64,000 nucleotides of DNA, from assembly GCF_032191835.1 (NCBI RefSeq), contig NC_083231.1, positions 126,232,001-126,296,000 on the forward strand, given 5' to 3'. Under the pieces are notes generated by a model. That model worked only from the letters and a program-made list of their open reading frames with translations. It was not told where the DNA came from and ran no database searches. Below are positions 22,594-63,499 of this stretch, in pieces. The first letter of the stretch is position 1; each line of letters begins with the position of its first letter. This DNA comes from Heteronotia binoei. Its lineage: Eukaryota. Both the position numbers and the translations under genes were made by a program.

Positions 22594-25500
22594 CTAGTAT
22601 TCCTCCGCCATCATGAGCACCACCAGGGCAGACCAGCCGGTGAAGGGGTAGCAGCCCTGCCCCTTGCCTGTGCTGTCGTGGTACTGTTCCCAGAGGTAGC
22701 CGCTCTCCTTATACTGCCGAAAGACGTTGCTGATGAGGTTGGCTCGCAGCTCCCGGTACAGGGAGGCGGCCTCCGCCCGGAAAGGGCCCTCCAGGTGGCT
22801 GTAGTGGCGAAGGGCCCGCACAGCCAGGTAGTTGATGTTGATCCAGATGGGCCCCCGCCAGTAAGGGGGGTCGTGCTCCGTGTTGTGCTTGAGGTAGAGG
22901 GGGCTGCTGCGCGAGAGGGAGCGCAGGCCGAAGGGAGTCCACAGGTGCTTCTCGCTGCGCATGTCTGCCAGGAGGGCGCCCAGCCGGGGTGATTCGGGCT
23001 GCAGCAGCTGCAACAGCAGAGGGAAAAGGCTCACGTAGCCCAAGGCGCCCCCCACAAACTGCAGCTTGGGGGACTTGCGAACCACCCGCAGAAGCCTGGG
23101 GGTGGGGAGGGGCTGGCCTGGAGGAGGGGGCCGCAGCCTTTCCCGCTCTAGCGCCACCGCCTGCGTGTGGTTGCCATAGTCAGCAAAGGTGCCCAGCGCC
23201 TCAGCCCAGTGGTGGCGCTCCAGCAGCCGGTTGTCGGCCAGCATCTCTGCCATCTGCCGGTAGTCCTCCGCTGCTGCTTCCCCCAGGCGCCCAGCCACCT
23301 GGGCCATGACCTCTGAGGCGAGCGCCATCCAGCAGCGCAGGTCCAAGTGGCGCTCATCTGGGGAGGGGTGCGAGGCCCTTGGGTAGTCATCCAGCCCTGA
23401 GGTCAGAGTCTTTGGGTTGAGGAACATCCGCGTGTCCTGGTCGCGCCCACGCCACCGGAAGGTGTAGGGCAGCGGACCTGCCTGGGTGCGATTGTACCAG
23501 TCGTACCAGCTCTGCAAGCGAGGGTAGAGGCGCCGCAGGTAGGGCACGTCCGCTGTGCCCTGGGACAGCAGCTGCTGCAGCACTAGGAAGAAGGTGGGGG
23601 GGTTCCCTGCACTGCTGTGTTGCACCACGAACTCCGCAGGCACCTTGGCGCGGGCCTCGTCGCCCAGGATCTGCTCGCGAGGGATCCAGCCTTCCGCGTT
23701 CATGAGGTCGAACCAATGCGCCAGCACTTCCTGGGTGAGGGCTGGATCCCAGCGGCTCAGCAACAGCTGGTGGAAGCCTTCATCCCACAGGAAGCCCCGG
23801 GGGAAAAAGGAGCGCGATGGCACAGCTGTGAAAAGGGGGCCCTCAGGATAGGGCTGGGGGAGCTCGCTGTGCGGAGACTGCACCAGTGAGTGCCCGTAGA
23901 AGTAGCCCATCCCTCCCAGCATGTTGCTGAAGGCAGCCTTGGCAAAGTCCTGCTCCTGCGCAGAGAAGCCCTTGCGGGCCAGCCCAAAAGTCCCCTCAAA
24001 GCGCTCCTCGAAGGCTCCTCGGTGCCTGGCCAACTCCCCGGTCAGCACCTCTCCTGCAAGACGCTCGGTACGGCCGGCGACGCTGCTGGACTCAAAGAGC
24101 ACCTCCAGCCGGCAGGGCACTGCCACGGTCACCTGGTGGACGAGGAGCTGGCTGCGAGGCTCTGTGCCCTCGGGCGGCCCCCGGTAAGTGTCTAGCCCCA
24201 AATAGTAGCGCTTGGGGGCCCCCGGCGGCGCGTGCACAAAACGAGGGCTGAGGCTGGCCTTCACCACGTCGCCCAGGCGATGCAAGCCCTCAGCCTTAGC
24301 CTGCAGGAAGTTGTAGCTGGAGACAGACAAGGAGAGAAAAGTCACGGGGAGAGAAGCAGGCAGCCACCTGGGCCTCCCACAACCTCTGCAGCTGCCGTTT
24401 GGCTAAGGATACCTAGCATAGAGCGGGGCTGTGCCAGCCTCACTGGTGGGCTGCTGGAAGGTGACGGTGAAGTCCCCCAGCTCTTCCGTTGTGCCTGCGA
24501 GAGAGGCCATGCGGTTCTTCTCCACTACCAAAGGCTGAAGCGTCCCTTGGCCATCGGTTGCCATGTAGAAGAACAGGGAAACTAGGGGGGGCGGGCTCCC
24601 CACCATCCTCTGTAGGCAGGAAAGGGGTGTCAGATGCTCATCTCACACAGGCAACACAATTGCAAGCTTTCTCGCAGCACAGAGCCTAGGGGTGAAAGTT
24701 TACAGTCTGGCTTAGACTTGTGATTACTTTGAAGATCGCTCTGCTGGTTAAACGCTTTCTGAATTCAACAGAAACAGTAGATTTACTAACAGAGTGTCCA
24801 CTTGCTCAGACCCTCCCAATCTTTGGGTGCTGATGTACCTGCTGCCCCCTGACATAAGACTGGAGCCTCATGGGAAGTGAGACATCGGTCAAGGCTCAAC
24901 AGGGCTGGCACTAAAAGGAAGGAATGATGCAAACAAGCCGCAGAGGGGCCTTCCCCGCCCCAACTGCCGGGAGCTTCTCCCCAAAGGCCTGCAGGTCTCC
25001 TCACCTCCGGCCGTGCGGTGACCCTCCAGCTCCAGTCGCCCCCGTGCCGGCCTCCCGGCTGCTTCACAAACTCTGTCCGCAGGCTGAGGCCGAGGTCGCG
25101 GATCTCCTGCACCCCAAAGTGGGCCCCGTCGTGCAGCAGCCAGCCATAGCGGGCCAGCCGGTCACTCTGCTCGCAACTGTGGCGCAGCCGGGCGTCCCCC
25201 TCGGCCTGGAGCATCCACATGAAGCCTAGGCGGGAGACACAAGGGGGTCACCGGGGGGCGGGCGGGCGGGCTCCCTCCCCTCCCGCGCTCTAGGCCCCCG
25301 CCTAGCTGGCCTGACCTGCGGCCGGGGCGCGGGGGCTGCGCGTCTTCATGCCGAAGTAGACGTGGGGCCGGTAGGAGCCCCACAAGAGCGCGGCGCTGCT
25401 GCTGCTGTTGGCCGGGAGGGCGCGGGCGGCCGGGTGCCGAGTCAGGGCCGAGGAGGGGCCGCCCAGCCCCCAGCGCGCCGCCACCAGCCCCAGCGCCGCC

Positions 25501-25625: not shown

Positions 25626-26512
25626 CCTCAAGCCCAAGCCGCGCCGCTCCACGTGGCCGGGGCAGCCCGCTGCATGCTGGGAAGCGTAGTCCGGCCGGCG
25701 GGGTCTCCTCTCGCACTTGCCTCCACGGGGCGGGGCCTTGCCGCTGCAGCAGCCAGGGCGCGTGCCCAGGAAAGCTCAAGCCCCGCCCCCCAGCGGAGGG
25801 CAGCCTCTCCTGGAGGCCCACGTCACCCCTCTCCCTTCCTCCAGCTGAACCCGCCCCGCCCCCTCAGCAACCTCCGCAGAAAAGGGCAGGGCTGCTCACC
25901 TCTTGCCAGGCTGGGCCCCCTAGCTCTTGGGCACAGCCCTAGTCTCCCTGCCCTCCAACCAGCCCATGACTCACATATTCTGCACCGCGGCGAGGACAAA
26001 TGCAAAGGTGAAACTGTGTCCTTTGGATAAATCTTTTATTGCTGCTGGAGCCACACCTCCTTTGCCTGCAAGGGCCTCACGTCGCCTGGCCCAAGCCCTG
26101 CCGCCCCCCCACCCCCAGCAAATTGCCCTATACCCTGAGATGCTTCCCCCCCCACACACACACCTGCACAGCAGCTTCTGGAAGCCAAAGCACAGCTCCA
26201 GGACTCCCCGCTCCCTCCCTCCACAAGCAGAGAGGGGCGCCTTGCAATGACAGCTCTGGAAGCCGCTCCAGGCCCGAGAGCAGAGGGGATTTGGGGATAC
26301 CACCAAGCCAGGACCAATCCCAGCTCTGGCCCCCGCTCCTTTTCCTTCCTGAGATGGGGGGTGGTGGAGGAAGGGGGGTGGCAGGCCAAGGAGACCAGTG
26401 AGATGAGCTTGGCTCCCTCTCTCCTCAGTCCGGCCACAGGAGGTCTCCAACATGCCGCTGCAGGTGCTGAGCGAGAGGGGGTGCTGGTGGGGAGGGGGCT
26501 GCCAGCCGCCAA

Positions 26513-29500
26513 TCACTGCTTGATTTGGCCACCATCTCCTTCGCTGACAAAGCGCTTCCGGCCCCTGAAGGGAAAGGGCAGGAGAGGGGAGGTGAGGGAG
26601 GGGCTGGAGAACCATGCCCCCCGCCAGGAAAGACTTCTGGTGCACCCTTCAACCCCCCCCCCCCCACACACACACACACGGACCGTGCCCGGCAGAGCAC
26701 CATACACCCAACTAAGAAAAGAACAGGCAAGAATTTTATGGTGTCTAAACCCAAGAAGGGATCTGCAGGCTTTCCGTCTGCCCAGGAAATCTCGTGGGGG
26801 CCTTGGGCAGATCTCCCCAGGAGAGGGCCAGAGGGGCTCAGAGACGTATCCCAGCCAGAGCTCCCCTGCCCTGCGCCCCAGCAGATCTTCCCAGTGGCAG
26901 GAGCCTACCGGGCAGGGCAGGCGTCTCTCAGCTGCTTGGTGATGACCCCCTCCTCGAAGCACAAGTCCACCAGGCGCTCCAGGATGTTGTGAGCCAGGGG
27001 GACGTCCAGGCTGATGTCTCCGAGCTCCTCGTACACCCGCTGGAAGCCCTGGAGGCAGGGAGGGGAGGGGTCAGGCAGGGCTGCCAAAGGCTGCAAAGCA
27101 GGCCCCCTCCCTCCCTCCCCCCGGGGTACCGTAACGGCTCACAGGCTCCCTTTCCCGCAGGTGTCATTGGGAGGTGTGGGGGCATCGTCTTCCCCAGGAG
27201 CCTGCCGTCCTCCTACCCTGTTCATCTGGTCCAGCGTCACCAGCCCCGTCTCCCACAGCACCTTCAACAGCTTCATCATCATGGCGACCGCCGTCTCGCC
27301 TGAGGACTCCAGCACCATCACCACCGCCTGGCAAAGAAGCAGAGCTGGAGCGGGGCCTGCAGGGCCAACGCAGGGCAGCCCCTTCCTCCCTCCAGCCGCC
27401 CAGCCCAGGGTCCGCGGGCACACCTCGTAGATGAGCTCGTGGTGGAAGTGGGGTACCTCCAGCTGGCGCAGGCAGCGCTCGGCCTCCGACACTTCTCCCG
27501 AAAGGAGGTACTCACGGAGCAGCAGGTTCATCTGCAGAGGGGGAGGAGAGAAGATGAGGACAGCCCCGCTGAGTTGCCGGGAGAGGTGACGGGATGGGCT
27601 GTTGCCCTGATCCAACATGGCTTCTCTGATGCTCTTATGGGCCCACCGGCTGAGGCCCAGAGAGCTTCCTGCCCATCCCCACATGAACTCCCAAAAGGGT
27701 CTCTGCCCAAGACCCCATCTGATGGCCTAGAAACACAGGGCTCCGATTCATGCCCCCCCCCCAATGCCACATGTGGAGTATGAGTCATTTGGAAATGCCC
27801 AGAAGCCCTTTAACACTGGCGCTGCGTGGGCGGGCACACACACCGTTTGGATCTGCAAGCAAGAAGAAAACCACTCCTCCTGCCCCCCAGAAGGGGTTTA
27901 AATGACGGGTGGAAAGACACGGGGGCTGGATAGCAGGAAACATTTTCCCAGGAAGAGTCAGCTGCCTTGGGAGGGGGTGAGCTCCCCCCACCCCACTGCC
28001 TGTCTTTGAGCAGCAGCTTTTAGAGATCCCAGAGTTGGAAGGGGCCACAAAGGCCATCTAGTCCAACCCCCTGCTCAATGCAGGGTCAGCCAGAGCTGAT
28101 TCCGCAGTTGAACAACTTGGACGGTCAAAAAGGTTTCTCTACTATGCCAATTGTGAGCTTCTCTCCTCTGCTGCCAACAGGACCAGCTCTTCAAATGCTG
28201 AAAGAGTGCCACCCTGTCCCCCTCCTCTTCTCCAGACTGGGCATGCCCAAGTCCCTCAGTCTCTCCTCCCAGGGCTTCTTGCCGGCCTCCTGACCCCTGA
28301 TCCTCCTCATCTGCTCCCGCTCCATTCTGTTTCGTTTAGGCTGATCCTGCATAAAGGGAGGGGGTGGACTCTATGGCCTCTCCAGCCCCTTCCAGCTCTG
28401 GGATTCTGGGGGGCCACAGAAGCTGCCTCCCCCACACCTGATTGCTGGTCCAGTGGAGGTCCCCCCCCCCGGACATCCTTGGTGTCAGTCCCTAAGTGGG
28501 AGAGGTGCAGCAGGCACCCTGGCTAAGCCAAAGGAGAAGTCTGGGCGAAGGTTCTGCAGCAGGCAGCCTGAGGGAGGAGAGGATGGACTGAGCAAGGTGA
28601 GCCCTGCACCCGAGGAGGCCCCTGGAGGGACCCTGGCTGTTATGGTCTCCCCAGGAGTCCTGCAGCGGCCTCAGGCTCTCCAAGGCCAGGAGCTCCTCTG
28701 TTCTGACTGGGAGCCTCTGGACCACTCTCTAAAGCTCAAGCCCTCCTCACCTCCCTGATAAGGTGCTTAACAGGTCTCTGGCCTCCCCCCACGCCCCACA
28801 CGTTGTCCAGGCGGTTGACGTCTTGCTTGATCCGCAGGAGGACAGCAGCGCGATCCAGGGCGGCCCTGCAGGGAGGAGGAGAGGCCTTCAGAAGGGAGCA
28901 GAGAGCAACTGGCCACAGGGCCCCCTTGCTGGCCCGCCTGCCTGGGGCTCCAGCACAGAGGGCCCCCCGGCCCCAGCGAGAGGGAGGGAGGCCGGTCGGG
29001 TCTCTCTCTCACCGAGCATGCTCACAGTCGACCCGCCCTTTGTAGCGCTCGAGGAAGTCGAGGGGCAAGGCGTGGTCAGCCACAGCCCGGGCGATGAACT
29101 GGCCCAGCATCTGCACAGACAGACGGGTGGACAGGGTTCAAAGGGCACGGGTCCTCCAAGCTCCCCGACCCCCGCTCTCCTGCCGGGGCTGGATGCTGAC
29201 CTGCGGGGCTTCCGGCGTGTCAAGGATCAGGTCGGGCAGGTCCTGCAGCATCCCATCGAACGCGGCCGCCATGTCCTCGGGGCTCAGCACCTTCCCCACC
29301 AGGTCCGACAGCAAGCGTGAGGTCAGCTCCCGGTGGCTGGCCTTGCCCTCCAGAGACAGTGCCACGGCCATCGAGGGCACCGCTGCCTTGTGGCCCCCCA
29401 GATTCAGGCCCCGGAGCAGCTCCTGCCAGGAAGGTGGAGGGCATCGGTCAGAGGTGGCACCAGCCCGGCACAAGCGTCCTATTGGCCACCCCCACCTGTG

Positions 29501-30984
29501 TGTTGCTGGGTGGTGGTCTCACCGCTGGGGCTGCTTGAGGGATTGTGCTGCCCCCAAAGGAGGGACACCCCCCTGCAAGTCCAGGCCGAGCCCCTGCGGC
29601 TCATGGGAGGACACCAGCCCCAGCCCCTTGTGCTGAGCACTGGGAAGATGCCAAAAGCCTTTGTGTTGTTCCTCAGTGCTTGCCAAGGGGGCTTGCCTTG
29701 CCCTGCTTGGGGTGGGCAGCAGGGGCAAACATCCCCCCCTCCTGAAACTCAAGGGGGCCCAGGACGTCCCCAACAGATCGCTGTGTGGACAAACATGTCT
29801 TTGCACTCCCCCACCCCTCTTATCTGTTGCTTGGTGATAAGTGATATTTAACCCAACCACTTTGGCTCTCCTCTGCCCCCTCCCAGCTGTGGTTCTGCTC
29901 TCTAGTGGATCACTTGAAGGGGAGAGGTGGGGGGTGCACCCGGAGCAGCAGCAGCAGCCACATCTCCCCACAAAGGACACCTTCCACTCCCCCTGCCCCC
30001 ACTCACCACCACCTCCAGGGGGTCTCCATGCTCAAAGTATTCCAGCACCATGGGGTGCACGTTCTTCTTCAGCTCCTCCTCCTCCAGCTCCGGCACCACT
30101 GTGGCATAGACCGTGTCGCCCTGGGGAGAGGGCACGGAAGGCACTGGGGGGCAGCTCCCCCCTCCCCCCCAGAGCCTGAGCCACGTCACCAGGCTGCGGA
30201 GGGCAGCGGGGCCTGGCAAGACCCGCACCCTCCGGACACAGCATCACAGGGCAGCATGCCTACCTTCACGGGGTGGAGGCGCGGAATTGGGGCGCAAGCC
30301 TCTGACATCAGCTGGAGAGTGGAATGGGCTCCCCCTCCCGAGCGGCCTTGGAGCAGGGGGCTAGACTAGATGGCCTCGGGGGGCCCTTCCCACTGGGGGA
30401 TCGGGGGAGGGCAGTACCTGGGCGGCCTCGTCGTAGTTGGGGTCCCGCGCGTCGGGCTCCTGGTAGGTGTAGACGAGGCCGGGCGCTCCCCAGACGCCTT
30501 TCCCTCCGGCGCCACCTGGGGAGAGGGGGCACGTGTGGGCGGGGCGCGGGGAGGCGGGGGCGGGGGGGCGGCGGGGAGGGGGCGGTACCTTTCTTGGGCA
30601 GGCCGCGCCCCTTGCCCATGCGGGAGCGCCGGTCGTGGCCCTTGGCGGCGGGGGGCGGGCTGCTGGGCTCGGGGCCGGCGGGCTCGGCGCCTCCTTCGGC
30701 CAGGGCGTCGCGGGAGGAGGTGCGGCGCAGGCGGCGCTTGGCCTTGGCCTTGAGGCGCGCCTCGTGCAGGGCCTTCTCGTGGGGGCTCCAGGGCCGCCCC
30801 CCGTCCATCAGCTCTTCGGCCCCCGGCGGGGCGGCCTGCGGGGCACACGGGAGAGAGAGAGCTCAGCGGGGGGGCGCTCTGCCCAGGCCCGAGGGGGCGG
30901 CCGCGCGAAGGCGGGCCGGGGGGGGGGACTTGCCGGCGGGAAGGGCCCGCGCGGCTGCTCGGCCGGGAGCGCGGAGGTGGACAT
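26513..30984 (-). CDS. PDCD4-like paralog (tandem MA3 domains), ~425-451 aa
   Basis: Exons 30835-30589, 30515-30418, 30120-30007, 29422-29201, 29110-29013, 28865-28751, 27531-27424, 27327-27217, 27048-26909, 26564-26513; intact frame, and from the second listed exon onward the boundaries match my recollection of human PDCD4. Motifs: [67 protein letters not shown]. Start is either ATG 30808 or a putative upstream exon 30984-30934 with a GC donor. AATAAA (minus) at 26035-26040. Confidence 0.95.
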
Positions 30985-31440
30985 CGGCGGCGGCGAAGGA
31001 CGGAGGGAGGGAAGCGAGGACGAGCTCTGCAGCCCCGCGGCGCGCCCCGTCCGGGCTCGGGCTTCTTGGGCCTGGCCTGGCCTGGCAGGAAGTGAGCTCA
31101 GAGCCGCCGCCGCCGGAGGAGGAGGAGGAGGAGGAGGAGGCGTGGCGGCCCTGGCACTCTCCGCCCGCCCGCCTGCCTGCCTGCCTGGGGGCCAAGCAAA
31201 GCCCCCCGCCCTGCGAGCGCACACGGCCGCGTCGCCTTTGCGCAGCGATGGCGAGCCAGAGGAGGAGGAGGAGCCCTTTCCCGGGACGCCGCCGGAGCTG
31301 CTCGTCCAAAGTGGACCCTGACGGGGGGGGGGCGCGGTTCTGCCTCTTCTGCGCGGCACCTGCCCCCCCCCCCCGGCCTGCCTGCCTGGAGACGGCACGG
31401 AGGAGCCGGCAACAGCGGCCAGCCTCTGTCAGACACCCCG
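30840..31440 (-). promoter_or_regulatory. CpG island / 5' region of the PDCD4-like gene
   Basis: Dense CpG, (GGA)n tract near 31117-31140, directly upstream of the first confident exon. Confidence 0.6.
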
Positions 31441-33453: not shown

Positions 33454-36400
33454 TCAGGGCTCCGTGGTTCTGCACATGCAGGCCAGGCCAGGCACTTTCC
33501 AGCGGTGGCGGCCCCCGTGCAGCCGCAGTGCCAGCCACTCCTGCTGGGGGGCGCTGAGGTAGGTCTCTGGGCTGCTGCCGCCTCCTTGCCCGCGGCTGAG
33601 CAGGTCCCCCGCCTGGCTCCCCCCGGCAGCTCCGGCAGGCTGTCCTTCCAGGCTCTCCAGGCTGTTGAGGCTGCCTGGGCCGCTGCCCAGCGTGTGAATG
33701 CCGTTGTAGGAGCCTGTGGGGCAAGAGGGAAGTCACCAGCCCCGCCTCCACCCAGCGCCACTGGCTGGTGCTTAGCAGGAGTGGGGGAGACACTGCAGCC
33801 CTCCTCTCCTCTCGCTGGGGAGGGTCTTTCACCCCCTCCGGGCCTCGGTTCCACTGGTGTCTTCTTCCTGCAGGGGGAGCTCAAGAGCAAAACCTTCCCC
33901 ATTCTGCAAGGGGCCATAACTATGCCTGGCCCAGAAGATGGGTCCCTCCCTCTCCCTGGGGCCGGCTTCAGAGGACTCACAGCACTGGCAGAGAGCTTCC
34001 CGGGGGTGGCACAGTAGGGAGGTCTTGCTGGGCTGCTGGAGGAGGCAGGCGATGGCGTTGTCCGCCTGCTGGAAGATGCGGAGGGAGAGCACCCGCTGCC
34101 TGCCCTCTGCAGAGAGGCCGGCCTCCTCGCACTGCAGCAACTCCTTGACCAGCTCAAAGTCCCGCTTCAGCTGAAGGGCACCCTGCAGGCTGGGGGGGGG
34201 GGGGCGAGGGCCGGTCTGCAGTCAGCACCATCCGGGCTGGACAGCCTCCTCTCTCTCCCCCGCCCCCCAGCTGGCTGCCTTACCTGAACCTGATCTTCTG
34301 GGCCAGAATGTGCTCCATCCAGGCTTCCAAGAAGGCGGTGGTGACCAGGCCGAGCACCGGCTCCTGTGCCTCGTGGGGCAGCAGCTGGATGCCTTGTAGG
34401 ACCTGGCCCAAGACTGCCTGGGCGGCAGCAGAGGCATACTCGCTGGGGGAGGAAGGCACATCTGCAGGGGCAAGCAGCCAACCGGCACTCAGGGCTCTGC
34501 GGAGTGGGGCCCGCCCAGGCCTCCCTCCCTGCTGGCCCCTGCAAGAATACCTGCTTGGAGGGCGAGGCGCCAGTGCTTGCCCAGTGGCATGGTCTGCCCC
34601 AAGATCTCCGCTGCCATGCGCTTACACTCTGAGGAGAAGAGCCTCAGGGCATCCTTTGCAAAATGCTGGGGGACAGAGAGGGGCATGAGGCTGGCACTTG
34701 GGGGCCACCATCCCCCCCCCTGAAAGGAGAAGCTGCCCCCCTCCCACGATCCAGCAGGTGCCTCTCCTGCTCTCCACTCCAGCTCAAGGGACAGAATGGA
34801 AGAAGCCTGGCCAAGGAAGGGCAGAGCCCAGCCCAGAGCCCCAGCGGAGGCGGTGAGGGAACAAAGGTGCCCGTGGCCAGAACCCAGGGATCCCCTCCAA
34901 GGGCCACGTGCTCACCTGCAGGCTGGTGTCCATGACACTGACTTGCTGGCTCAGCTCCTGCTCCTGCTGAGAGACCAAGGGGCTGGGCTTCTTCCCCCTG
35001 CCGGGCGGGACCGGACTGCTCAGCGCCGCCACCCTGCTCACCTCTCCCTGCAGCAGCTGAAACGAGGAGGAGCAGCGGGGTCTTTCTTCTGGGGAGGCTG
35101 CGGCAAGGGCCCTGTGGTGGGGCTGCCCTCTCCCTCGCATCTGGAGGCCGCAGGCTCCCTCCTTCCCCCCACCTGCTCCGGGGCTCTACTTGCCTGCAAG
35201 TCTCCGTGGGTGACCAGCAGGAACTGGCTGAGGGAGCCGGAGGCCAAGTGCTGTGAGGCTTTGCTCAGGACCCAGTAGCAGGAAGTCTGGCTGGCGGCCA
35301 CCGAGAGGGACAGCAGAGCCGAGCGGCAGCCCGCAGGCCCCAGGAAGCGGTCAGCTGCAGGGGAGGAGGGCCGGTCAGCAGCAGAGGGCCACACGGGGCC
35401 AGGGAGGCAGCGGCCGAGGGACACTCACCGGGGCTCCCAGGGAACCAGGTGTTCAGGCACCGCAGGGAGGAGGCTAAGGGCGGGAAGAGGCTTTGGAGGA
35501 GCTGAGCCGTGTGGCTGCTTGCCACAGCCGTGGTCTGAGACGGCGTGGCCACGCACTTATCGGTGAGGCTGGAGCCCAACACGTGGCAGAAATCTGGTCG
35601 GGAAAAGAAGGCCGTCTGGTGAGCGCCCCCCCCCCAGCACAGGTCCCTTTCCCAGGAGGCACACCAGGCCCATGGCTGCCCCCTCCCCCCACATCAGAGC
35701 ACTGGCCTCTCCCAGATCACCAGGCTCCCCAGCACTCCAGCTGACCTCGGTCCCAGCGCTGGAGGACCCCGCGCACCAGCAGGTGTAGCAAGGAGCCCCT
35801 CAGCTCCTCGGTGCTCTCTTGGGGAAGGCAGGCTGCAAGCAGAGAGAGGGAGAGAGAGGCCAGGATCAGCCAGGCTCACCAGCAGTGAGGATGAGCAAGG
35901 GCCTGGCTTTCCGGGGCAGCGGAGGGGGGGGTGTCCTGGTCTTGGCCGCTGCTTTGGAGCCCCTCTCCTTCCCATGGAGCAGACTCTCCTCCTGCAGGAG
36001 GCCCCCAGAAGCAGCCCCTCAAGGCCCCACAATGCAGGGCCTCTCTCTGGCCCCTGTCGGGGCTGCCTGAAAGGCCTGGCCTCCTGAAGCCCCCGATCGA
36101 TGGGGGCGCTGTCCTGCTCCAGCTGTGCTCCAAACTCCTTGCCACGAGCCAGGCGAGCACCGACCCCCCGCCCTGCGCAAGCCTGGGACCTGCTGCCTGC
36201 CCCCCTGCACCCACCAAGTTGCTGGCCCATCAGGGCTGCTGTCCTTGCTTGGGACTGAGTGGGGGGCGAACGGAGCTCCAGCTGGTGAGCCAGGGCAGTG
36301 GCCGTGGTGCTCCAGAAGAGGGGCCGGTATTGTGCCCAAAGCGCCCCGGCAGCTTCCGAGTAGGAGGCGTCCAGCCAGCGCACGGCCTTCCAAGCGGGCA

Positions 36401-58984: not shown

Positions 58985-61900
58985 TCAGTCCCCCACGTCT
59001 ATCTCTTCGTCGTCGTCGTCCTCGCCGTCGGAGAAGCCGTCCTTGGCGCGGGAGGGCGAGGGGGCTCGAGGCAGGCTGCCGGGGCGGGCGCGGGTGGGCG
59101 GGGGGTCGGGCTCCAGCTCCGGCATGGCGGCCAGCTTCTCCAGGGCGGCGGGGGGCAGTTTCTTGAGGGACTCCACGTCGGCCTTCATCTCCTCCAGGTC
59201 GCGCTTCAGCTTGGCGCGCCGGTTCTGGAACCAGGTGATGACCTGCGCGTTGCTCAGGCCCAGCTGCGCCGCGATGTGGTCTCGGTCGGCCGGCGACAGG
59301 TACTTCTGGTAGAGGAAGCGCTTCTCCAGCTCGTAGACCTGGTGGTTGGTGAAGGCGGTGCGCGACTTCCGACGCTTCTTGGACGGCTGCCGCGGCCCGA
59401 AGGCCCCCAGCGGGTCCCGGCCTGCCAGAGGAGAAGACCAGAAGGAGGCGGCGGGTCAGCGCCGGGCCACCGCACGAGAGCACCTGCCCGCCGCCCCCCA
59501 GGGGGATAAATGGCCGGAGGAAAGGAGGGAGAAACCCCCCGGCCTGGCCTGCCTCGGGGAACCAAGGGGGGGGGGCGCCCGCGGTCAGGCCTAAATGCCG
59601 CTCCCCACCCGCCGTCTTTGGAGACACAGACCGACTTCCAGCTGCTCTGTCTGCCTGCCCGTCTCCCCCCCCCCGCCCCCCGCAGCTCCTTCACCCGACC
59701 TCGGCTGGAGGGAGGACTATCAGGAGGGCGGGCGGGGCGGGGAAAGGTGGGGATCAGGGATTTATTTTTATTTCGTTTATTTATTATATTATATTTGTAT
59801 CCCGCCCTCCCCTGACAGGCTCAGGGCGGCGGACATCAATGAAATGGCTGGGCTGGGCTCAGGCGAGCGAAGCACACGATTGCGGCCCTTGGAACCGCCG
59901 GCTCCAGCCCCCTCCCCGCCCCGCCCCGCCGCCCTCCACCCGGAGCGGGAGCCAGAAGCTCCGTGCAAAACAAAATAAAACAAAAACAACGCGAAAAAAA
60001 TACAAAACAGCGGGGACATTTCATGGCGGGGCAACTTCCCCTATTCTAAACTGTCCGGGACATGTTGGAAATCTAAGGCAGCCCCACACACCCCTCCGCT
60101 CCCCCCGCCGCCCGGCCGGGGCGTTCAGGACACGTCTATCCTGGGGCGGGGGTGGGGGGGCGTCAAGAAATTTTAGAATAAAACTGGAGTTTCACAAGTG
60201 AGTTTGCAACGGCTGGGNNNNNNNNNNNNNNNNNNNNNNNNNNNNNNNNNNNNNNNNNNNNNNNNNNNNNNNNNNNNNNNNNNNNNNNNNNNNNNNNNNN
60301 NNNNNNNNNNNNNNNNNNNNNNNNNNNNNNNNNNNNNNNNNNNNNNNNNNNNNNNAGAGTTGAAGCTCCGTTTGCAAGAAATGCGGCTAACATCGTCCAG
60401 AAATTAATGGGATCACAAACGAAACAAAAGCGCGGAGAATGAGGAAACACAGATTCTCTGGGACTTCCGACTGCAAACAGATAAACACCTGGAGCACACA
60501 CACCCTCCCCACACACCCACATCACAATTGTAGGATCGTGTAACGTGTAATAGGGTTTGGATCACCGACACTGCAATCGCAGGAGGCAGCAGAACAGAAA
60601 AGAAAGAACAAGAGAAGATCACCAAATACCAAGACCCATGAACAGAGAGCCTCTGGGAGAAGGCGGCGACCATCCTGCCAGTTGTCCCTGGAGCCCTTGG
60701 AGCAGCGCCCAGAAGTCTCAAGCAACACCTGGACCTTCTGGGCATGCAGCAAAGAACACCAGCTCAGCTCCAGAAGACCGGTGTTGCTCGGAACAGCAGG
60801 AATCCTACGAAGAAGAAGAGACCTCCGCAGTCCCCGAGAACTGGGCGAGATCTCGAACTGCAGAANNNNNNNNNNNNNNNNNNNNNNNNNNNNNNNNNNN
60901 NNNNNNNNNNNNNNNNNNNNNNNNNNNNNNNNNNNNNNNNNNNNNNNNNNNNNNNNNNNNNNNNNNNNNNNNNNNNNNNNNNNNNNNNNNNNNNNNNNNN
61001 NNNNNNNNNNNNNNNNNNNNNNNNNNNNNGTTACCTACTGTTAGTTACTGTTATGGTTCTTGAGGGTGGAGAGCGAGCCGGATCGTGAGGCCTCTGGTCA
61101 CCGGGCTGTGCGCCGGAAGGGGCATCGGGCCCTCCTTCCTCTCGGGGCAGGAGCCGCCAAGGCGACGCAGCACGCTGGACTCTCACTTCCCCTTGGAAGG
61201 GAAGCGAAGGGCTTCCTCCTCCTCCCCCCTTCCTAATTTCCGAACTAACCGGAGTGCGGGGGGGGGGGGCGAAGGGCCTCCTCTCCACCGACCGCGGGGA
61301 TGTGCAGGCCGAAGGCGGCGAGAGGTCCGGCGGCGCCCGCGAAGCGAGCCCTGGATTCGGTCGGCTGCTCGTTTGCCGGCCAAATCCTCGCCCTGCTGGC
61401 TTTCTCACCAAATCTCCGCGGGGCTTCCCGGCTCTCGCTCTTGTTGCGGGGGGCGGAGAGGGGTGCTGGTGAAGAGGTCGCGGGGGAGTTCTCTTCTTAG
61501 GCGGGGCCCTTTGAGCCTCTCTCGCTGCCCTTGGCGGCTCCGGGGGATAGTGGTTGGGAGCAACAGAAATCGGAGGCAAAACCTGGGAAATAAACTTTCC
61601 AGCCAACCCAGTTGTATCCCAACAGAGCGATTCCAAATAAGCGCGCAAAACCGGAAACAAAACGAAAAACAAAAGAAACAAGCGGATTTAAACGGCTTTT
61701 TCAAGCGCCCGAAGACAATCGCCGCGGTTCTTAGCCGACAGCAGGCCTTTGGGCTTTGAAAGGGTCTTTCCGTCTCTTCCCACCTTTCCCGAACGACGGA
61801 CTCAGCCCCCACCTTCCCAGGGACAGGCTGGCTCAGGAGAAGCAGAGCGAAAAAGAAATCCGTTTTCGCCTGTTGGCTAAGTGGCTTGAAGGGCTTCGGC

Positions 61901-63499
61901 GCCGCCTGCAGCCGCCTCTTCCCGACATCTTGTCGATGCAAAGAAGAACCACCGCGACGGAGGCGGAAAGAAGGCAGNNNNNNNNNNNNNNNNNNNNNNN
62001 NNNNNNNNNNNNNNNNNNNNNNNNNNNNNNNNNNNNNNNNNNNNNNNNNNNNNNNNNNNNNNNNNNNNNNNNNNNNNNNNNNNNNNNNNNNNNNNNNNNN
62101 NNNNNNNNNNNNNNNNNNNNNNNNNNNNNNNNNNNNNNNNNNNNNNNNTGTGTAGCCTCTTGGCTCCTTGAGGTCCGCTTGGCTTCTAGCTGCGGCCTCC
62201 GGAGACCTTTCTCTGGGCAACCCTTGGAGGCCGCGGGCCTTGGAGCGAAGGCCTCCAGGGCGGGGAGGGTTCGGGGGCCGGGTAGAGATTGGAGGCAGCG
62301 GGCTACGGCCCCGCGGGCGCTCCACGGAGCCAGGATCGGGCCGAAGGGGAGGCGCAGCTTTTCTCCGGCCAGGCGGGCCCGCGCCTTTCTGCCGCGGAAC
62401 GCTGGGGCCCGAGGGGGCCTCTGACTTCCCAGGCTCCGTCCAGAGCGCCAAAGCCTCCCACGAACCGGCGCCCCACAACAGTCTTCGGGACCAACCAGCA
62501 AGTCTCGGGCACCTGTTCCATTGGGCTGCCCCTTCCCCCCACCCGGAGCCTCCCGGGGCGCTTCCCAAAGACCCAAACGCGCAGCCCCTGAGGGCGGGGG
62601 TCGGCTCGGGCCTCGCTCTCCCTTCCTCGGCTCCGCCAGAGACAAGAGCGGGCTTTGCCTTCTCGCCCGCCCCCCAGCTGCTCGAAGCCCCGCCGCAGGC
62701 CGCGGAAGGAAAGGCCGCCGCCGCCCCCCATCCTCCGCCCTCCGCTGGGGAAGACCCCACTCGAGTCGCCGCCGCCTCAGGCCGCCTCTCAAGAGCCGAG
62801 GGCGGGGGGGGGGGAGTCCCTAAATGCTTCTCTAGGGACAGAGAGGCCATCGGAAGGACTGCGGCGTCCCAACCTGGCTGCGCCGGGTTGTAGTATCGCT
62901 GCTGTTGTTGTTCTTATTCTTGCTCCTGTTCTTGTTGGGGTTAATCCCAGCAGGGGGGCAAGGGCAGAGTTCTCTCCAGTCCTTTCCCCAGCGCCCCACT
63001 CCGTCTGCCCGCCCGCCTCGCGCTCCCGGGTTGGCGGCTTCCAGGAGAAGCGAGCGGCGGCGGCGGGGCTTGCTTCCTTCTCCTTCCCCGGCGCAAAAGA
63101 GAGCCGGGGTCCTCTCAGCCGGGTGGAGCCGGCTTCCTCTCAGCTTGGCGGCCTGCTGGAGAAGCCCGACGGCCTGAGGCCTTCCATCTTACCTTCGGCA
63201 GCCTGCAGCACGTTGCCCTCGAGGCCTTGGAAGGTTTTGGCTGCCAGCTCCTGGAGGGCGCAGAGCGGCGAGGCCGGGGCGGGCAGACCGGGCCGGGAGG
63301 CGGCGCCCTTGTCCGGCAGGCGGGCCGAGGCGGCCTTGCGGCCCGAGGGCTTGTTGAGGATGTCCTCGATGCCGAAGGGGGTCAGCGGCTTGTTGGAGTT
63401 GGCGGGAGGCGGCAGCTGGTCCAGGGGGTTGCGCGGCCTCTCCTCTGCGCCCCCGCCGCTCGCGGGCGTCGCCGCTTTCGCTGCCTCGGCCGTGGTCAT
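58985..63499 (-). CDS. LBX2: Ladybird homeobox 2, 2 exons, ~247 aa
   Basis: Exon 1 63499-63193 (eh1 motif FGIEDIL, SPLCALQELAAKTFQGLE), GTAAG donor. Exon 2 59421-58985 (homeodomain KRRKSRTAFTNHQVYELEKRFLYQKYLSPADRD..WFQNRRAKLKR; C-terminus EEIDVGD). LBX2 rather than LBX1 is assigned by synteny with TTC31 and CCDC142. Confidence 0.93.
60218..62148. other. Three assembly gaps (N runs at ~60218-60355, ~60866-61029, ~61978-62148) in the LBX2 intron
   Basis: N runs are directly visible. Confidence 0.99.
60435..60815 (+). mobile_element. Degraded R4/Dong-clade non-LTR retrotransposon 3' end (restriction-like endonuclease) in the LBX2 intron
   Basis: Across frameshifts it reads ENEETQILWDFRLQTDKHLEH..IAGGSRTEKKEQEKITKYQD..SLWEKAATILPVVPGALGAAPRSLKQHLDLLG..QLQK..LLGTAGILRR. 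Confidence 0.75.

Follow-up and report, generated by a model that had tools for sequence, protein, structure and literature searches.

The stretch of DNA analysed here, a 64,000-nucleotide window of the Heteronotia binoei genome (NC_083231.1 of assembly GCF_032191835.1, positions 126,232,001-126,296,000; coordinates below are window positions), carries a PDCD4-like gene whose product has neither of the serines that build the beta-TrCP phosphodegron in human PDCD4. Situated on the minus strand (26513-30984), the gene is intact and is both transcribed and spliced; its 11 coding exons encode a product of 451 amino acids. Inspection of the splice borders on this strand identified GT/AG junctions throughout, save for one GC-AG intron. 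The parts of the gene are as follows:

30934-30984, minus strand: coding exon 1, starting with the ATG at 30984 and comprising 17 codons with a phase-0 donor; contains no DSG
30836-30933, minus strand: intron 1 (98 nucleotides), GC-AG type, with donor GCAAGT and an acceptor made up of a polypyrimidine tract and CAG
30589-30835, minus strand: coding exon 2, which encodes residues 18-100, a disordered regulatory region at the N-terminus with the degron-homologous site; aligns with human PDCD4 48-115
30716-30733, minus strand: RLRRTS, an RxRxxS consensus of S6K1/Akt/RSK-type AGC kinases, its Ser equivalent to human S67
30689-30709, minus strand: DALAEGG, positional homolog of human D70-SGRGDS76 and of the motif DS[T/A/N]RESLSE of the clade, with both phospho-acceptor serines absent
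between 30703 and 30704, minus strand: point of a 12-nucleotide deletion, from transcript comparison
30418-30515, minus strand: coding exon 3, which together with the end of exon 2 encodes the 40S mRNA-channel binding segment
30120-30007, 29422-29201, 29110-29013, 28865-28751, 27531-27424, 27327-27217 and 27048-26909, minus strand: coding exons 4-10 with GT/AG borders, encoding two MA3 domains (Pfam MA3)
26513-26564, minus strand: last coding exon, containing the stop codon TGA (26513-26515) and a second RxRxxS site, which corresponds to human S457
26356-26512, minus strand: 3' untranslated region (UTR) of ~155 nucleotides; RNA molecules end at 26356-26359

In human PDCD4, R62LRKNS67 is the S6K1 site, and its phosphorylation promotes phosphorylation of S71 and S76 in D70SGRGDS76, leading to SCF-beta-TrCP binding (PMC6539695, PMC3462793). 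The first-pass annotation of this DNA had described that mechanism correctly, and had proposed that a PDCD4 paralog encoded at 30690-30760 keeps the kinase site while DSGRGDS is replaced by DALAEGG. This peptide does exist: it is encoded on the minus strand from 30745 down to 30680, inside the translated stretch 30766-30668, the earlier coordinates being right within about 15 nucleotides. When the exon was compared with all PDB chains using phmmer, the sole match was full-length human PDCD4 (8xxl chain CD, 469 amino acids, E = 6e-9). Exon residues 12-73 aligned with human residues 48-115, with the degron-site peptide facing human RRLRKNSSRDSGRGDS, so that the comparison is one of positional homology and not of motif coincidence. 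It bears out the replacement of DSGRGDS by DALAEGG and leaves RLRRTS intact at residues 52-57 of 451. Position 2 of the degron is Ala, positions 6 and 7 are Gly-Gly, and Glu stands at position 5 only. As no Ser or Thr occurs between S58 and an SSP motif 18 residues on, no described type of phosphodegron could form at the homologous place. The absence of DSG, previously stated for the N-terminal exon, extends to the complete protein, in which a motif scan found neither DSG nor D[ST]G in any of the 451 residues; the only relaxed degron matches were TSALPAE (residues 3-9), ETGLVTLD (377) and EEGVIT (420-425), the latter two within the C-terminal MA3 region. An upstream exon had also been considered as a source of the missing degron. 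Exon 1 does exist, and Paroedura PDCD4-like aligns from window residue 1 in support of it, but it supplies no DSG and was rejected as such a source. The reading frame is open 5' of the earlier ATG at 30808, with a good acceptor at 30836, and an upstream scan found no in-frame ATG between 30984 and 31119.

Relatives were collected by an exhaustive representative search with exons 8-9, followed by word searches from grouper pdcd4a and turtle PDCD4-like. The best 120 listed matches of the grouper and turtle queries all fell in the same paralog clade, and no mammal was among these 120. Fish members, including gar, bowfin, coelacanth and bichir, are named "programmed cell death protein 4a", and tetrapod members (turtles, squamates, alligator, many birds, caecilians, salamanders and frogs) are named "programmed cell death protein 4-like". 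Gar and bowfin lie outside the teleost duplication. The window protein is 89.9% identical to Paroedura picta PDCD4-like over 451 amino acids, 77.8% identical to gar pdcd4a (range for fish pdcd4a, 72-78%) and ~62% identical (119/193) to mammalian PDCD4 over four MA3 exons, and it contains the N-terminal signature of the clade. In a maximum-likelihood tree of 34 clade members and two arthropod outgroups, the branching followed the species tree, and Paroedura, Gekko and Sphaerodactylus joined the window protein in a gecko clade (97/85).

Gene order was compared using three neighbours as synteny anchors:

22597-25247, minus strand: MOGS-like gene (GH63 N- and C-terminal domains), downstream neighbour
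33832-34221, minus strand: CCDC142 exon (PF14923, E = 2.7e-23), upstream neighbour
58988-59455, minus strand: homeodomain exon (homeodomain match, E = 2.8e-22), which by its residues we take to be of the ladybird/LBX type

The window additionally contains a weak HR1 match at ~1.1-1.7 kb and a TPR gene between CCDC142 and the homeodomain exon. This gene order is presumably that of human 2p13.1 (WBP1-MOGS-MRPL53-CCDC142-TTC31-LBX2), a region paralogous to 10q24-25, home of LBX1 and PDCD4. In the grouper locus (L002), pdcd4a is flanked by a WBP-1-domain gene and by GH63, with the tandem orientation that the window also has, so that in both genomes the PDCD4-like gene is directly upstream of MOGS on one strand. 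The gar locus had no called neighbours within 10 kb. Traces of the same neighbourhood occur in faulty public models, as the Alligator PDCD4-like record (P0282) carries the name "transcription factor LBX2 isoform X2" and the gene model of the godwit Limosa lapponica (P0298) fuses PDCD4-like with a CCDC142 domain. The faulty models also include P0281 (Paroedura) and P0006/P0005 (turtles), and in several the N-terminus reaches too far or changes frame across the GC-rich 5' region, which is free of stops. Naming, synteny and identity levels support the earlier identification of a PDCD4 paralog; judged by these, the gene in the window is orthologous to fish pdcd4a and to the sauropsid and amphibian "PDCD4-like", and is a second PDCD4 gene of which mammals appear to have no copy. 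Its neighbourhood fits an ohnolog from the two rounds of vertebrate genome duplication (2R) that was lost in mammals. The gene is already auto-annotated in dozens of genomes and is little studied, in zebrafish as pdcd4a, where it is expressed and induced in miR-21 morphants (PMC3709480). PDCD4A phosphorylation shifts in the liver of anoxic crucian carp, and the supplements of that phosphoproteome contained no PDCD4 rows in which phosphosites of the serine cluster could be located (PMC11170284).

To describe the degron segment across the clade, a census was taken of the 177 clade proteins containing the AKAKRR anchor. Both serines at canonical spacing, in the form [DN]S[TANS]x[ED]S, were present in 148 of them. 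Serine at position 2 was missing in only three, the first serine being kept in at least 165, and [DN]SG did not occur at the site in any of the 177. Aligned as DS-T-R-ES-LSE against human DS-G-RGDS-VSD, these serines are the homologs of S71 and S76, set one residue closer, with the spacing of DSGxxS. The cluster SSRDS[T/A/N]RESLSE is conserved from coelacanth and gar to birds, and coelacanth, gar, paddlefish and bichir are near-identical through the degron stretch. In place of the degron Gly, most fishes, amphibians and some turtles have Thr, most lizards have Asn, and birds, alligator, Paroedura and a side-necked turtle have Ala. Among 32 named taxa, 23 keep both serines, eight keep the first only (turtles, snakes, a skink, Xenopus and the kagu) and one, Sphaerodactylus (DAAAREVLPE), keeps neither. 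Arthropod PDCD4s, found with a Daphnia query whose named matches were all arthropod, lack the whole KAKAKRR...SSRDS module. In the mormyrid Paramormyrops kingsleyae (P0331), residues ~66-75 read SSRESGRDSVSE and contain ESGRDS, with Gly at degron position 3; no other clade member looks as much like canonical PDCD4, and this is possibly a reversion or convergence. The first-pass description of a paralog without a degron is therefore only half right: strict DSG is absent at the site from every clade member listed, but homologs of both S71 and S76 are kept in most members, and their DSARES form resembles the degrons of NRF2 and p100. Overall, the clade keeps a conserved, homologous and possibly weakened degron-like cluster.

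Total loss of the serines was confined to the window lineage and Sphaerodactylus, which contradicts a degron loss ancestral to the paralog clade. The window reads DA----LAE with neither serine, while Paroedura, a fellow member of the gecko clade, reads DSARESLSE. The transcripts used to follow this difference came from four public RNA runs (two studies, one species label) mapped onto 25900-31400. In these, transcript contigs and raw reads spanned the nine introns from exon 2 on at exactly the modelled borders, with the joint of exons 2 and 3 (30513|30587) crossed by one X1 contig and 6 X8 reads and the joint into the last exon (26563|26908) likewise bridged by RNA. Read coverage was present in 30868-31051 and there was none in 31052-31235. 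Behind 30703, the X1 transcript contig holds 12 additional nucleotides, GGAGTCGCGGGC, and reads SSRDAARDSLAEGG, so that exactly the residues ARDS are missing from the window in comparison. The insertion is also missing in four of four X8 raw reads, and an assembly artefact at the deletion site was rejected on these grounds. With the X8 reads agreeing with the window and X1 differing, the indel is a real one that differs between samples of close relationship. The deletion is flanked by direct repeats, CCCGCGAC, a signature of replication slippage, and the segment would have passed from DSARESLSE through DAARDSLAE to DA----LAE. Total loss is thus a recent event of the gecko lineage in a very GC-rich, disordered exon and is not ancestral; a credible cause that involves no adaptation is the GC-biased erosion of such a disordered segment.

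Several further features of the locus were recorded alongside the gene model. Intron 1 is apparently of the rare GC-AG type, its exact junction being only approximately backed by RNA. The 96-nucleotide intron between exons 8 and 9 (27328-27423, minus strand) is in frame and stop-free, such that its retention would add 32 residues to the second MA3 domain; it was spliced out in the reads. Inside a 1.2-kb intron, RNA contig depth ran into the thousands, with many loose ends, at 27556-27739 and 27924-28107, patches that look like transcribed interspersed repeats outside the gene. At 26378-26382, within the 3' UTR, 3 bases of the window stand against ~37 different letters (ACTAGACAGGTGAGCGAGGTGGCAGC...) in all four RNA runs, which is either an indel that separates the relative from the window or a minor collapse of the assembly. 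Neither a miR-21 seed match (ATAAGCT) nor an AATAAA/ATTAAA signal was found in 26300-26512 (minus strand). The MOGS-like gene begins ~800 bp past the PDCD4-like stop, giving a tight tandem pair as in the grouper, and a single open exon of 602 codons (22597-24402, minus strand) spans the whole GH63 catalytic domain. Runs of N lie beside the LBX-type gene at 60218-60355, 60866-61029 and 61978-62148.

Outside the degron segment, the functional elements of PDCD4 were found in place. Pfam PF02847 (MA3) matched on pieces of exons 5, 8 and 10, and PDB chains of PDCD4 MA3 domains were matched at E = 2e-26, 2.7e-22 and 6.7e-16. The window protein has identical Asp residues at the alignment positions of human D253, D414 and D418, and Asp in place of E249; these four human residues are, as we take it, those with which PDCD4 contacts eIF4A. 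A second kinase consensus, RKRFVS (residues 437-442), corresponds to the human S457 site. LPKK (96-99) and GVWG (106-109) keep the equivalents of K114/K115 and V123/W124, which cryo-electron microscopy and mutagenesis identified as critical for 40S binding of human Pdcd4 (PMC11310195). By homology, the product would be an inhibitor of translation initiation of the PDCD4 type, in which the two MA3 domains would clamp eIF4A and the N-terminal KK...VW segment would plug the 40S subunit's mRNA channel, so that initiation would be repressed.

What the altered segment could mean for stability depends on how strictly beta-TrCP reads its degrons. A phosphoserine at position 2 was the common denominator of beta-TrCP degrons in a 2026 crystal study, which also found that Ala at position 3 of WEE1 (DpSAFQE) leaves the binding mode undisturbed, albeit with a weak affinity of 567 nM against 6 nM for PDCD4, that Glu mimics phosphoserine in WEE1, and that a mono-phosphorylated ATF4 peptide binds tightly (PMC13097077). 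DSAxxS forms are found among listed beta-TrCP degrons, namely DSAPGS in NRF2 and DSAYGS in NF-kB2 p100 (PMC10317156). Since the position-2 phosphoserine is common to the crystallised degrons and the window has Ala there, no beta-TrCP docking site would be expected. The S67-equivalent Ser in RLRRTS could remain a target of AGC kinases, and the change of the anchor Ser to Ala together with slippage deletion of ARDS would leave kinase signalling unable to build a docking site. We therefore predict, as the somewhat more probable outcome, that the window protein is insensitive to destruction through S6K1 and beta-TrCP; translation repression, phosphorylation of S57 and this insensitivity are all read from sequence. 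A number of points weigh against this reading of the gene as a whole. The RNA runs match the window at 95-99% and so stem from a close relative or a different individual, and the junction of exons 1 and 2 is approximate, with one X1 contig joining 30805 to 30932 and the intervening letters undefined. The split between paralog and orthologs rests on synteny, naming and identity levels and not on a joint tree, the comparison with the canonical degron rests on the human sequence, and the contrast in stability is a sequence prediction for this protein as for all pdcd4a orthologs. In addition, the plasticity of beta-TrCP (mono-phosphorylated ATF4, the Glu mimic of WEE1) may leave room for a cryptic site, and other E3 ligase routes to PDCD4 exist, possibly including SKP2.

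The same sequence changes could have arisen by neutral erosion in a disordered exon under extreme GC pressure, if the Gly-less cluster was never a working beta-TrCP degron or became unimportant in sauropsids, in which case the gecko protein would behave like its orthologs and the missing degron would be no sign of altered regulation. Base composition speaks for this explanation, with a GC content at third codon positions (GC3) of 0.88 for the PDCD4-like coding sequence and 0.95 for exon 2 and with replacement residues (A, G and P) that have GC-rich codons, as do the repeated losses of the second serine in turtles, snakes, skinks, Xenopus and the kagu and a 12-nucleotide indel that lies between direct repeats and varies among close samples. 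It is harder to reconcile with a cluster that is near-identical from coelacanth, gar, paddlefish and bichir to caecilians and lizards and that keeps its first serine in at least 165 of 177 proteins, or with DSAxxS forms that match accepted degrons. The span from coelacanth and gar to lizards amounts to an estimated 430 million years or so, and such long conservation argues for a function, whose loss should then have some consequence. We regard neutral erosion as a serious alternative, if on the whole a doubtful one. Far less probable, in our estimate, is that the protein is still destroyed on growth signals, by way of a cryptic or non-canonical beta-TrCP site or of another ligase reading RxRxxS; the motif observation would then hold, but the conclusion of a stable repressor would be wrong. 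Both RxRxxS sites are strictly retained, which implies a continuing importance of phosphorylation, degrons outside the consensus are tolerated by beta-TrCP (PMC13097077), relaxed matches are present at residues 3-9 (TSALPAE) and 420-425 (EEGVIT), and RSK/14-3-3 and further routes have been reported for human PDCD4 (PMC6539695). Against this, the relaxed matches lack a D-pS core, EEGVIT is inside the C-terminal MA3 region (exon 10), and TSALPAE is not conserved, other squamates beginning with MSASAIPASSGE.

Strict conservation of RxRxxS in a Gly-less clade hints that the phosphosite may have a role beyond priming degradation. It is conceivable, although we hold it to be unlikely, that the whole ancient ohnolog (fishes, amphibians, reptiles and birds; lost in mammals), with its Gly-less cluster, is a weak substrate or non-substrate of beta-TrCP and provides a repressor pool that mitogen and mTORC1 signalling phosphorylates but does not efficiently destroy, RxRxxS acting independently of degradation. 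If so, RxRxxS could serve localisation, 14-3-3 binding or release from the ribosome, and the gecko lineage would represent a natural "degron-null" allele. A role in ectotherm dormancy or fasting, raised as speculation in the first-pass annotation, is unsupported for the gecko allele; as many birds retain the gene, the general notion of an ectotherm-specific role was also rejected. Published work offers a single hint on physiology, the changed phosphorylation of PDCD4A in the liver of anoxic crucian carp (PMC11170284).

Taken on its own, the gecko allele is a curiosity and not a discovery, a recent and possibly neutral loss in a GC-saturated exon. It is a real but modest lineage-specific variant of a known, annotated family, for which the clade-level claim was overstated. 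PDCD4 is a well-studied tumour suppressor whose abundance is set mainly by S6K1-primed beta-TrCP degradation, and work on it has been almost all mammalian. Mammals have a single gene; in most of the other vertebrates there is a second copy, highly conserved, with the degron Gly replaced and with the kinase site and both serines kept; a literature search found no paper discussing the degron of pdcd4a or PDCD4-like. Together, these proteins offer a natural degron series (DSG, DSA, DST/DSN and none) on a near-identical scaffold, which could be used to separate the contributions of Gly and of each serine to beta-TrCP recognition in vivo and to follow S67 phosphorylation without degradation.

Compared with human and mouse PDCD4 (PDB 8xxl, 9bkd, 2zu6), the window protein has the same architecture of a disordered N-terminus, a 40S segment, two MA3 domains and a C-terminal segment with a kinase site, and shares both RxRxxS sites and Asp at the eIF4A-contact positions. 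It differs in its ~62% identity over the MA3 exons, in the change of DSGRGDS to DALAEGG, and in an N-terminus ahead of the basic motif that is shorter and unrelated. The neighbourhood also differs from that of human PDCD4, which is presumably at 10q25, in being of the MOGS/CCDC142/LBX type. With fish pdcd4a (zebrafish, gar, bowfin, coelacanth and grouper), the window gene has in common the N-terminal signature, 72-78% identity, its place in the tree and its position upstream of MOGS, but the fishes hold the full serine cluster (DSTRESLSE or NSTSESLSE) and the window none of it. It is one gene with the sauropsid PDCD4-like of Paroedura picta, Lacerta agilis, Mauremys, Alligator and birds, Paroedura being closest, exon 1 included; here too, Paroedura, lacertids, iguanians, archosaurs and others differ in holding DS[A/N/T]RESLSE. 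Among established beta-TrCP substrates, the DSARES of birds, alligator and Paroedura is like the D-S-A-x-x-S pattern of the NRF2 and p100 degrons. The window segment, in contrast, is unlike even the relaxed, Gly-less degrons of WEE1, NRF2 and p100, with Ala at the phospho-anchor and no Ser or Thr until the SSP motif.

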